From: Salpingoeca rosetta
Taxonomy: Eukaryota; Protista; Choanoflagellata
Assembly: GCA_033442325.1 (NCBI GenBank)
Contig: JAWQFM010000002.1
Span: 1,626,307 to 1,690,306 of the forward strand
Direction: 5' to 3'
Length of the DNA stretch: 64,000 bases
Below, piece after piece: positions 42,589-49,070 of this stretch. The notes under the pieces were generated by a model. The model saw nothing but the letters and a program-made list of their open reading frames with translations. It was not told the DNA's origin and did no database searches. The translations under genes were made by a program, and so were the position numbers. Positions within the stretch are counted from its first letter, which is position 1; each line of letters starts with the position of its first letter.

Positions 42589-45500
42589 TCAATCTCGCGC
42601 CAGCACAATCACGCGGTCCTCAGCACTCCACATGCGCATCGCATCCTGCAAGAAAGGAAGGGAGGGTGTGTGTGTGTGTGTGTGTGTGTGTGTGTGTGTG
42701 TGTGTGTGTGTGTGTGTGTGTGTGTGTGTGTGTGTGTGTGTGTGTGTGTGCTCCTTCTGTCTGTATAGTTCCATGTGGTGTTTCCTGCGTCATGTTTCTC
42801 TGTCCTCGTGACCAAACCTTCTTTGGCGGGTTGATGACAGTGTCCTTTGAGCCAACCGGAACGAAGCCAATGAGAATCTATCACATTGGCAGACAGAACA
42901 AGTGAGTTCACGCACGAGGGTAGGTAGTTACAGACCACGCACGCACGCCCATCATCAACTCGCAAACACACACACACACGTACACACACGTACACACAAG
43001 CACATACAAGCACACACACCTCCTGGGTGAGGCGTGTTCGGGCCTGCAGATCCCAAAACGAAAGCTCCTCGTGCGCGTGCTGGAGATACCGGCCGGCACT
43101 GCGCACATACAGCTCGCAGCCGACACTGGTCAGCAGCTCAGAAAGGACAGCGCTGAGGAACCGGTTCTCGGACACTTGCGCAATGTAGCTGGAGATGATG
43201 TCGTTGCTCATGACGTAATCAGATCCAGACATCGCCCGCACGAGCTGCTGCGTTTGGGGATCGAGAATCTGCCCACAGTTGGGGTGTGTACGTGTGTGTG
43301 TGTGAGCATGTGTGTGTGAGCATGCGTGTGTGCATGTGTGTGAGCATGTGTGTGAGCATGTGTGTGTGAGCATGCGTGTGCATGTGTGTGCATGTGAGTG
43401 AGTGTGTAAGTGTGTGAAAGGGTGTGCATGTGCATATATGTGTGTATGTGTGTATGTGTGTGAGCGAGCATATGTGTGTGTGTCAGCAATGCGTATGTAC
43501 AAGCACAAAGGAAAAAGCTCAATGTCCATGTACATGTTGTTGCTTGCAAGCATCTCAAACGCCCCTTTTCCCACCTCGCCGACGATGGCAGGCTGCTTCC
43601 TGGCGACAACACCGTGATACCCGGCCGTTCGCTCGCGCTGAATGCTCTTCACCATCAGCAGCGTCGCCAGCGATCGCGAATCTGCCTCCTGTTTGCTCTC
43701 AGACTCGTTGGACAGAATCAGAATGTTGTCAAACTCCTCCAACCTGCGCGTGCGTGTGCATGTGTACATCGTGAGTGCGGATTCCAGTGCCCTTCACACA
43801 CACACACACACACACACACACACACACACACACACACACACACACACACACACAATGCAGTTAGCAATCACACAAAGACATACACACAGACCAGCACAAG
43901 GTGCCTCACTTGAGTCCCTGCAAGTGCTTCCTGCTGAGCGTGTTGCCTTCCTTATGTTGGATGGTGGTGATGTTTTGCAGGCGCTCCCGCGTCAGTCCGC
44001 CCTCTCGCAGTGCAAACATCTGCTCCTCACGCGGCTTTTCGCTCATCATGTACAGCACCGTGCCCTGCAGCAACATCGGGTCGGGAAAGCCGCGTTTGCA
44101 TGTGTGGTGGCGTGTGGCGTACATGCGTGACGTTGATGCTGTTTGCACGTGTACTAGCGCATGACGCGACGTTCGTGTGCGCGCACATGTGCGTGCGTGC
44201 GTGCGCGTGCGACGTGAATCGTTCGTCGGTATCGTGAATAACACGTGTATGTGTAAACATTTCTGCGTGCATGTGTCTGTATGTGTATGTGTATGTGTAT
44301 GTGTGTGTGTGTGCACTCACGGGTCCGACTTGCTCGTCGAGCTGCATGACAAGATGCTCCATATCGCGCCGCCAGTTGAGGAAGAGGATGCGGCTGCGGT
44401 GCACTGTCTCTCGCGCGGAAGGAACGAAGCTGCGGTGGTCAATGTGCACTTGCCGCTCAGCCTTTTGTGTGGCGTTGCGTTGTATTGCATGTGTGTTGTG
44501 CGATGGAGTGCACAGTCAGAGACGCATTTGTCGTTGTGAGGAGCAGCAGGCAGGGGCAGAGAGGAAGCAGGGCATACGCACGTACAGGCACACGCCCAAA
44601 ACGTGCAGACTGAGCCGGGAGGTACAACTACTGACAAATGGTCATGCACACACTCACGCACACACGCACAACACGAAAACGGGTGCGGCACACCTTTGGT
44701 GCATATGTGTCGTCATCTTCGGCAACGACGATAATCTCTTCTCCCGATTGAATGACGCGGCTGTCTGGTGGATTCAACAAAATCGCACTGGTTCAAATTG
44801 TTTCAAATTGGCACGTGTAGTTGGGGGAAGGGGAAGATGTGTTCCAGCGGGTGTGAGTGACACGCGCGCTTGTGTACATGTGTGTGTGCACATGTGTGTG
44901 TGTGTGTGTGTGTGTGCACATGTGTGCATTTGTGTACATTTGTGTGTGTGTATGTGTGTGCGAGCAGAGTCGCAGAACATGAATGCCTTGCAAGTGTGCA
45001 CGTGACTTTGAATGCATGAGCGGCAGCAGAGCGCGCGTCGCATGTGCTGCTCACCCGCCGCAGCGAATACCGACAGGAACGGCTGCGTCAAACATGAAGA
45101 CGATTTCACCAAAGCGCCGCCCGACCAGCTCTGTGGAGTCAACATGAACATGGCAGTGGGCAAACGTTTGGAGCCAGAGCGTGCAGGCATGAGGGACGCA
45201 GCGCGATTGATGTGCATGTGCATTCCAACACACTTGCTGAAATGACGCTGCCTGCAGCATGACACGCTGGTTTGTCGCACCTTCCCATTCACGCATGTAG
45301 AACTCTGGACCGTCAAAACTCAGCAGCTCAGCCATGATTGCGCCTGTCATGATGATGACGATGATGATGATGATGATGATGATGATGATGATGATGATGA
45401 TGATGATGATGGGGGGGGGATACAAACGGAGCAGAATGAACTTTTGGCGCCGAGCAATTGCTGTGACATGCGCATGTCAATGAGTGTGCTCTACAGCAGC

Positions 45501-48500: not shown

Positions 48501-49070
48501 ACACGACACAACACACAGACACACACAGACACACACACACGACACAACACACAGACACACACGACACAACACGCACAACACAATCCACACACACAACACA
48601 ACACACAACACAACACAACACACACGACACAACACAAACACAACACAAACACACACAACACATACAGAAACAAACAACGCCATGGAAGCAAACCTGAGAT
48701 GACGTCTGGGACAAAGGCGTCAAAGACAAGGTCGAGGGCAGAGCACAAGAGTAGAAGTACCACCAAACTGAGCATCAACCGCCTCGCCGTGCCGCCCTCG
48801 GCGACTTCCGCACCCCAAGCCTTCAGCACGTTGACCGACATCATGCACAAAGGAAGCAACAAACAAAGCCGGCGAGCGAGCGAGCGAGCAAGAGGCACGC
48901 TGGCAAGCAAAGAAGCAGCTCGGGACGTTAGATGGCAGTTTGCTCGCTCGCTTACTGGCAGCAGAGCAGGAGCAGATGGATGAATGGAGCCAGAGCGCAG
49001 GAGGAGGGTATCGATGTTTGGTTTGTCAGCAACGTTCACTGGAGCGTCGTGTTTCCGCAAAAATCCTCCA
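42589..49070 (-). CDS. CASTOR/POLLUX/DMI1-family cation channel (TM helices, pore, two RCK domains), ~20 exons; N-terminus uncertain
   Basis: Spliced peptides: AKPMALMLATLLLIVVGG; WSAWTWISDPGTHAD; GGMLVFALLVGIISDEISERVDDLKKGRSSVIETGHSLILGWSDK; ELCLANESMGGGTIVVLSTRDKEEM; VVCRTGSPL; SARARSIICLA; HDIIGRLMV; IIVVAEDDDTYAP; ILFLNWRRDM; DSRSLATLLMVKSIQ; SDYVMSNDIIS; WSAEDRVIVLARD*. These are colinear with plant DMI1/CASTOR motifs. Confidence 0.92.
45348..45411. repeat. (GAT)n trinucleotide microsatellite in a channel-gene intron, next to the acceptor
   Basis: ~21 GAT units; reads (ATC)n just upstream of the AG on the - strand. Confidence 0.9.

Follow-up and report, generated by a model that had tools for sequence, protein, structure and literature searches.

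The closest described relatives of the gene treated here are the plant ion channels CASTOR and POLLUX of Lotus japonicus and DMI1 of Medicago truncatula, which reside in the nuclear envelope and are gated by a ring of RCK domains (ring structures 6o6j, 6o7a, 6o7c, and 7vm8). Work on the family, including its phylogeny, has dealt almost exclusively with green plants (PMC8644588). Its members are not always nuclear, since Arabidopsis PEC1 and PEC2 are POLLUX-like proteins of the plastid envelope, which may conduct K+ and affect Ca2+ release (PMC8644588). We analyzed a 64-kb stretch of the genome of the choanoflagellate Salpingoeca rosetta (64,000 nucleotides of contig JAWQFM010000002.1; hereafter the window, in whose positions all coordinates are given). 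It contains an intact, full-length gene for an ion channel of the CASTOR/POLLUX/DMI1 family, and the product has the same order of helices, pore, RCK1 with Castor_Poll_mid, and RCK2 as the plant proteins. We consider it probable that this product is a Ca2+-gated cation channel and that the gene is old, was inherited vertically within Holozoa, was lost toward animals, and did not come by transfer from plants.

An intact CASTOR-family gene in Salpingoeca rosetta

Splicing of the genomic sequence gave a coding gene of 19 exons, which runs on the minus strand from 48844 to 42589. The frame opens with the ATG at 48844, closes with the TGA at 42589-42591, and comprises 716 codons without interruption; the 18 introns are all GT..AG, 142-312 nt long, and consistent in phase. 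The product corresponds to the hypothetical protein PTSG_01334 (P0001; 715 aa), encoded on a 2.37-Mb scaffold; the query for this match was the stop-free reading that contains exon 1, of which the exon part alone was scored. The spliced model and PTSG_01334 differ only by one Gln at the acceptor of exon 10, and this identity marks the window as DNA of a choanoflagellate and not of human. This acceptor (45629-45632) is a NAGNAG site (..GAG/CAG/CTT..), whose first AG is used in the 716-aa model and whose second AG is used in the annotated 715-aa protein, and there may be two isoforms of these lengths. An earlier note on this DNA, made from its letters, had placed a gene of about 20 exons at 42589-49070. 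The exon count agrees well with the 19 coding exons and their canonical, phase-consistent splice sites. The interval does hold the gene, but its upper bound lies in the 5' flank, as the coding sequence begins at 48844. Eight of the nine motifs quoted there are found on the minus strand inside that interval; the remaining one, SARARSII, reads SARSII in exon 8.

The earlier note had recognized a member of the CASTOR/POLLUX/DMI1 family whose colinearity with the plant proteins begins in the transmembrane region and reaches the C-terminus, and on this point Pfam, phmmer, and alignments with full-length plant proteins agree. The Castor_Poll_mid profile (PF06241), which it had proposed as a check, scored 93.7 bits against a gathering cut-off of 26.7 over residues 345-442 of the full protein, and Slo-like_RCK scored 42.6 bits. 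When the exons were scanned one by one with Pfam, only exon 13 passed, with 27.6 bits for Castor_Poll_mid, over the gathering score; most other exons were too short for scoring. Exon 17 by itself matched the solved chains of CASTOR (E 1.7e-15) and DMI1 (E 4e-11). In phmmer comparisons with the solved chains, the whole protein was colinear over residues 189-713 with the rings of LjCASTOR (E 6.7e-123) and MtDMI1 (E 2.4e-111). With full-length plant proteins, one alignment stretch begins ahead of the pore, at about residue 77, and reaches the C-terminus, at 40-44% identity over about 90% of the length. Judged by these sequence comparisons, the similarity to the CASTOR family is far beyond chance.

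A structure model computed with AlphaFold2 from 60 homologs was confident, including the pore, with a predicted local distance difference test score of 89.9 and a predicted template modeling (TM) score of 0.80. The model has helices at residues 19-41 and 47-77, an outer helix at 102-125, a pore helix at 130-142, and an inner helix at 154-189, followed by two Rossmann-type lobes. Hydropathy peaks at about 26-41, 48-61, 108-122, and 161-173 agree with these helices. Hydropathy and model together predict four transmembrane segments ahead of the ring, and the pore helix and filter would lie between the last two, followed by a C-terminal part of two tandem RCK domains. The solved plant CASTOR and DMI1 structures represent the ring part, and the membrane part of the S. 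rosetta protein is a prediction. In Foldseek, the LjCASTOR and MtDMI1 rings ranked first (TM 0.93-0.94 of the target, root-mean-square deviation 2.2 Å), and both Foldseek and phmmer showed two tandem RCK domains colinear with these solved rings.

All exons lie on the minus strand. The membrane part is encoded by the first four. Exon 1 (48694-48844, residues 1-51) carries the start codon and the first hydrophobic helix, and its limits are given by the ATG, the GT donor, the exact N-terminus of PTSG_01334, hydropathy, and the model. Exon 2 (48249-48381, residues 51-95; AG/GT sites, phase, and model) encodes the second helix and a linker. Exon 3 (47741-47979, residues 95-175) encodes the outer helix M1, the pore helix, the filter, and the inner helix M2, according to hydropathy, the model, and the pore alignment; the filter codons S142-D-P-G-T-H147 lie at 47823-47840, as seen by reading the sequence and comparing columns. 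Exon 4 (47417-47464, residues 175-191; splice sites and model helix 154-189) completes M2 and links it to the ring.

RCK1 starts in exon 5 (47147-47220, residues 191-215) with GHSLILGWSDK and continues through exon 7 (46490-46582, residues 241-271), both placed by motif, splice sites, and alignment, and exon 8 (46115-46240, residues 272-313; splice sites and alignment). Exon 12 (45055-45130, residues 383-408; splice sites, Pfam, and alignment) belongs to Castor_Poll_mid. RCK2 occupies exon 15 (43910-44064, residues 487-538; splice sites and alignment), exon 16 with DSRSLATLL (43575-43743, residues 538-594; motif, splice sites, and alignment), and exon 17 with DYVMSN (43020-43268, residues 595-677; motif and the exon-only match to CASTOR and DMI1). 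Exon 18 (42818-42877, residues 678-697) and exon 19 (42589-42645, residues 698-715 and the stop codon) were placed by splice sites and alignment. The exons that carry ring ligands are described with those ligands below.

Compared with the plant proteins, the S. rosetta protein has an N-terminus about 160-215 residues shorter, a different intron set, and no symbiosis context, and a basic cluster resembling a nuclear localization signal was not found in it. PEC1 and PEC2 belong to the same family, a likeness drawn from their published description. Choanoflagellates have no plastid. Along with these plastid-envelope members and the differing pore filter, the N-terminal features somewhat weaken the role in nuclear Ca2+ signaling that the earlier note had suggested. 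After CASTOR and DMI1, the next Foldseek matches were full-length Slo1/BK, Slo2, and GsuK. Animal Slo1/BK and Slo2 and bacterial GsuK and MthK share the architecture of a pore followed by an RCK ring and its fold (Foldseek E about 1e-23 to 1e-21), and BK is opened by Ca2+ binding to the ring. The Slo and GsuK matches are, however, only 12-16% identical, with TM 0.45-0.6 and a root-mean-square deviation of 8-14 Å. In contrast to Slo/BK, the S. rosetta protein lacks an S1-S4 voltage sensor and the TVGYG filter, has four helices before the ring, and belongs to a different Pfam family, with Castor_Poll_mid present. The helix count, the missing TVGYG, and the low identity and TM place it outside the Slo/BK family, which is an architectural analogue only.

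Distribution and descent of the family

The CASTOR family is common to bacteria and most eukaryotic supergroups and is not specific to plants. Run exhaustively against 1.84 billion cluster representatives, phmmer returned 5432 relatives, 1441 of them at E ≤ 1e-30. Colinear bacterial relatives were present in 549 species genomes in a scan of one genome per bacterial or archaeal species, seeded by an 8-sequence alignment. The best bacterial relatives, at 37-39% identity, come from Planctomycetota and Myxococcota-type metagenome-assembled genomes (MAGs), and many others, from Ignavibacteria, Bacteroidota, cyanobacteria, and actinomycetes, are about 30% identical. The bacterial CASTOR-like proteins (about 630-660 residues, 28-39% identity) are colinear with the S. 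rosetta protein from the outer pore helix to the C-terminus. They differ in lacking the two extra N-terminal helices, and most also lack the residues of the Ca(I) lobe lock.

Among eukaryotes, holozoan members were found in Salpingoeca urceolata, Monosiga brevicollis (XP_001748729.1), Amoebidium parasiticum, and the species with the CFRG gene-model prefix, which we take to be Creolimax fragrantissima. Stramenopile members occur in the diatoms Thalassiosira, Cyclotella, and Stephanopyxis and the labyrinthulomycete Mucochytrium, and euglenozoan members in Artemidia, Entosiphon, and Sulcionema. Ancoracysta, the hemimastigote Spironema, and Paulinella (Rhizaria) add further members, and the green lineage contributes chlorophytes, prasinophytes, and streptophytes. 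With this breadth in bacteria and eukaryotes, the framing of the gene in the earlier note as plant symbiosis-type is not supported. The S. rosetta protein is 47-49% identical to those of S. urceolata and Amoebidium, above any plant. These two orthologs come from transcriptomes and are therefore expressed in their species.

No animal ortholog was seen, and the earlier note likewise knew of none, although this negative evidence is soft: the best 150 of the 5432 phmmer relatives hold only six holozoan-clade members, and a word-indexed search with a holozoan profile, which found neither animal nor fungal orthologs, also missed two of its own query members. In that search the scores fall from the holozoans (at least 1003 bits) straight to plants (826 bits). 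The only "fungal" member seen (P0138; KAH9249530.1, labeled Batrachochytrium salamandrivorans BASA81) groups with Mucochytrium quahogii (100/99) and not with holozoans. This placement suggests contamination of the Batrachochytrium assembly, or a transfer, and not an opisthokont-wide gene. P0136, a short protein that also falls among the eukaryotic members, is encoded on a scaffold where the neighboring genes are of eukaryotic type.

We built an overview tree of 240 rows with FastTree and a main tree of 58 rows (37 eukaryotic and 21 bacterial; 646 columns) with IQ-TREE under LG+C20+F+G4 by posterior mean site frequency. In the main tree, all eukaryotic rows stand opposite all bacterial rows with support of 100/100. 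The S. rosetta protein and those of Monosiga, S. urceolata, Amoebidium, and Creolimax are joined in a holozoan clade (98/97), within which the choanoflagellates, including S. rosetta, and the ichthyosporeans each form a group (100/99 for both), and the gene tree matches the species tree. Green plants form a separate clade (100/100), and the S. rosetta protein is not nested in it. When the six holozoan rows were forced together with six streptophyte CASTOR/POLLUX/DMI1 rows, a grouping that was a prior hypothesis of the earlier note, in a test set up after the tree had been inspected, the log-likelihood was 71.8 worse and the approximately unbiased (AU) test rejected the grouping (p-AU 0.0003). 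Tree and AU test thus place the protein outside the streptophyte CASTOR/POLLUX clade, and a plant origin of the gene is contradicted by both. A metagenome scaffold from ENA (L082:1795-4266) carries a member (P0084) inside the choanoflagellate clade as sister to S. urceolata (99/91). It is an uninterrupted 2.5-kb open reading frame whose N-terminus is extended by a proline-rich stretch, in contrast to the genes of S. rosetta and Monosiga with their 18 introns.

Introns were mapped from the genomic loci of Monosiga (19 exons), Klebsormidium (15 exons), and rice CASTOR (12 exons). Ten of the 18 S. rosetta intron positions, among them the one downstream of exon 2, are shared with Monosiga, phase included, and an eleventh is one column off. 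The spliced gene therefore predates the split of these choanoflagellates. Only one position, that of the intron downstream of exon 7, is shared with Klebsormidium and rice, which is about the chance level. This pattern indicates that the S. rosetta introns owe nothing to plants. We also considered intron sharing with the green lineage as evidence of deep ancestry and discarded it, as a single chance-like coincidence is uninformative.

The strongest rival explanation is an old horizontal transfer from an alga, another protist, or a bacterium into the holozoan ancestor, or into the ancestors of choanoflagellates and ichthyosporeans, with introns gained later. It would suit the patchy distribution in opisthokonts, with choanoflagellates and ichthyosporeans but no animals or secure fungal member seen, as well as the poor resolution of the deep eukaryotic branches. 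The closest bacteria are nearly as similar to the S. rosetta protein as plants are, and green-lineage genes have hardly any intron position in common with the S. rosetta gene, two further points in favor of such a transfer. We nevertheless regard it as unlikely, given the full separation of eukaryotic from bacterial rows, the agreement of gene and species trees inside Holozoa, and the rejection of a streptophyte donor by the AU test. Furthermore, the family is present in at least six further eukaryotic supergroup-level lineages, so that one early eukaryotic origin followed by losses needs fewer special events. Under vertical inheritance, which we favor, a family common in bacteria would have been present already in early eukaryotes. 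The gene would have been passed down within Holozoa to the Monosiga, S. urceolata, Amoebidium, and Creolimax orthologs, retained by choanoflagellates and ichthyosporeans, and lost on the way to animals. The data fit the option of the earlier note that this is an ancient eukaryotic gene lost in animals.

Ring ligands, pore filter, and predicted gating

In LjCASTOR, the Ca(I) site is formed by D442, with a lobe lock of H463, R589, and R590; D444 is the Mg ligand; the Ca(II) site comprises E493 and the E552 backbone; and the Ca(III) site comprises A342, S345, D553, and D554 (Kim et al., 2019; PMC6697748). The residue numbering of that study equals the solved-chain alignment index plus 309, and we took the ligand and filter columns from the family alignment stored with the tree. 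All 11 ligand or contact residues of the S. rosetta protein are identical to those of LjCASTOR. Exon 6 (46845-46919, residues 216-240; alignment and the published ligand list) carries A220 and S223, which correspond to the Ca(III) ligands A342 and S345. By alignment, exon 9 (45817-45885, residues 314-336) carries D324 at the place of D442 in Ca(I) and D326 at that of the Mg ligand D444, and exon 11 (45281-45343, residues 362-383) carries E375 at that of the Ca(II) ligand E493. Exon 10 (45554-45632 in the model, with the acceptor at 45629 in the annotated protein; residues 337-362) holds H345, the counterpart of H463, and the start of Castor_Poll_mid. E431, D432, and D433 in the AEDDDTY motif of exon 13 (44694-44787, residues 408-439; Pfam on the exon alone) match E552, D553, and D554 of Ca(II) and Ca(III). 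R470 and R471 in the WRRD motif of exon 14 (44321-44461, residues 440-486; motif and alignment), where RCK2 starts, match R589 and R590.

The same ring residues are kept in nearly all eukaryotic rows and in the nearest bacterial group; bacteria farther removed depart from this set at the Ca(I) lock. Since every side chain that binds Ca2+ or Mg2+ or locks the lobes in LjCASTOR is kept, the S. rosetta channel is most likely opened by Ca2+ on its cytosolic or nucleoplasmic side. By analogy with the solved plant proteins, the channel would be a tetramer that passes cations and is opened and closed by its RCK ring.

The pore filter reads S-D-P-G-T-H in S. rosetta and A-D-S/A-G-N-H in plants, so the protein does not have a plant-type filter. 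DPGTH is the usual filter outside plants, present in Amoebidium, Creolimax, Mucochytrium, diatoms, and one close bacterial row (L004, a MAG labeled Enterobacterales). The filter thus sets the plant members apart from the rest of the family, and does not separate members from non-members.

The nearest bacterial CASTOR-like group has a DPGT(H/Q) filter and keeps all ring ligands, as S. rosetta does. In particular, the nearest bacterial rows (L001, L004, L005, and L006; Planctomycetota, Polyangiaceae, and Myxococcales MAGs and the one labeled Enterobacterales) combine a eukaryote-type Ca(I) lock of His and Arg-Arg with a DPGT(H/Q)-like filter, features missing from other bacteria. The eukaryotic family may have come from bacteria of this kind, or these rows may reflect a back-transfer from eukaryotes.

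The Monosiga ortholog (P0172; L081:3001-7107, Monosiga brevicollis CH991566.1) keeps all ring ligands but that for Mg, where Ala replaces the Asp of D444. In the pore, a degenerate LLAPASLL stands in for the ADPGTH of other members, and its branch of 2.42 is by far the longest in the tree. An error in the gene model was ruled out for this filter, as no DPGTH-like motif occurs in any frame of the gene. As far as the sequence tells, pore function may have been lost or changed in Monosiga brevicollis.

A decaying relic, or a protein with a changed role, is a second alternative; in place of a Ca2+-gated cation channel it might, for example, be a regulator that works through the ring alone, or a channel for a different ion or ligand. 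The unplantlike filter and the fast-evolving Monosiga ortholog without a recognizable filter speak for it. Against these stand the intact 19-exon frame with canonical splice sites, the complete set of ring ligands, and the sharing of the DPGTH filter with most non-plant eukaryotes and the nearest bacteria. The confident structure model, pore included, and the expression of the S. urceolata and Amoebidium orthologs indicated by their transcriptome origin also argue against it, and we find such a decay or change of role quite doubtful in S. rosetta.

Several findings weigh against our reading of the gene as an old, vertically inherited Ca2+-gated cation channel. The S. rosetta filter differs from the plant filter at three of six positions, so plant Ca2+ permeation cannot be transferred to the S. 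rosetta channel. The degenerate filter and long branch of Monosiga mean that pore function is not uniformly conserved in choanoflagellates. The deep branches among eukaryotic groups are poorly supported (10-64). Finally, absence from animals, fungi, and filastereans is drawn from the best 150 of 5432 matches and a word-indexed search that missed two known members.

Genomic setting and significance

Most introns of the channel gene are filled by long (CA)n/(GT)n arrays, perfect or nearly so, which also occur throughout the window, for example at 42666-42750, 43795-43854, 46288-46379, 46635-46755, and 47553-47641. These arrays produce spurious frames that run far without a stop and are rich in Cys-Val or His-Thr. 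Intron 10 contains a (ATG/CAT)21 array followed by a G9 run (45349-45411) directly upstream of the exon 11 acceptor.

The neighbors of the channel gene are ordinary for choanoflagellates. A gene for a receptor-type tyrosine kinase with leucine-rich repeats (LRRs) lies on the plus strand at 35931-42224; LRR_8 falls in 35931-37790, and the two parts of the kinase domain fall in 37900-41220 and 41277-42224. The kinase gene is convergent to the channel gene and ends 365 nt from the channel stop codon; an annotation table of 2013 names the preceding gene "tyrosine-protein kinase srk3". Farther upstream on the plus strand is an ATG2 homolog with the autophagy lipid-transfer domain (24773-32317, a 2514-residue open frame). 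On the other side, an LRR protein gene (49204-52260, plus strand) is divergent, and since its ATG and the channel ATG are 360 nt apart on opposite strands, the two genes may share a bidirectional promoter. The kinase neighbor, the GT..AG introns, and the 2.37-Mb scaffold agree with what the earlier note had described as host-type introns in a holozoan genome with tyrosine kinases.

Recent acquisition of the gene from a plant or green alga, or contamination of the assembly by plant DNA, would explain why angiosperm CASTOR proteins are the top-scoring named matches in a plain search (40-44% identity), but it is excluded for practical purposes by an identity of only about 42%, the S. rosetta scaffold with the gene between tyrosine-kinase and LRR genes, 18 introns full of the window-wide CA/GT microsatellites, ten intron positions shared with Monosiga against one with plants, closer relatives in S. 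urceolata and Amoebidium than in any plant, and an AU test that rejects grouping with streptophytes.

In the annotation table of the 2013 S. rosetta genome paper, the best match of PTSG_01334 is already given as rice "probable ion channel CASTOR / DMI1-like", and the antisense row for this gene in the same paper shows about zero reads (PMC4054682). Public records carry its Pfam domains. PTSG_01334 is not listed in the supplements of a 2025 S. rosetta paper, and in the literature searched we found no paper that discusses a holozoan or other non-plant eukaryotic member of the CASTOR family; a "DMI1" in a Capsaspora paper proved to be a Leica DMi1 microscope and not the channel. PTSG_01334 is thus a real new holozoan member of a known family that had already been annotated by machine, and as the similarity has stood in a table since 2013, the surprise is modest.

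The data do not point to a transfer from plants to holozoans. The gene is not a plant gene in the wrong place but would be an old inheritance of which no animal copy was seen, and it would add one more part of Ca2+ signaling that was present before animals and then apparently lost. A far bolder idea, to which we give very little credence, is that eukaryotes ancestrally used CASTOR-type channels at the nuclear envelope or endoplasmic reticulum for Ca2+-activated Ca2+ release, or for counter-ion flow. This system would still be used by unicellular relatives of animals, for example in converting bacterial cues into perinuclear Ca2+ oscillations that direct rosette formation or mating, and would have been lost in animals. 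If true, there would be a functional parallel between plant symbiosis signaling, where Ca2+-activated conductance of cations (Ca2+ or K+) by these channels is needed for perinuclear Ca2+ spiking, and the interactions of choanoflagellates with bacteria. S. rosetta can be manipulated genetically, and this tractability makes it a non-plant system for the role of the channel outside symbiosis.

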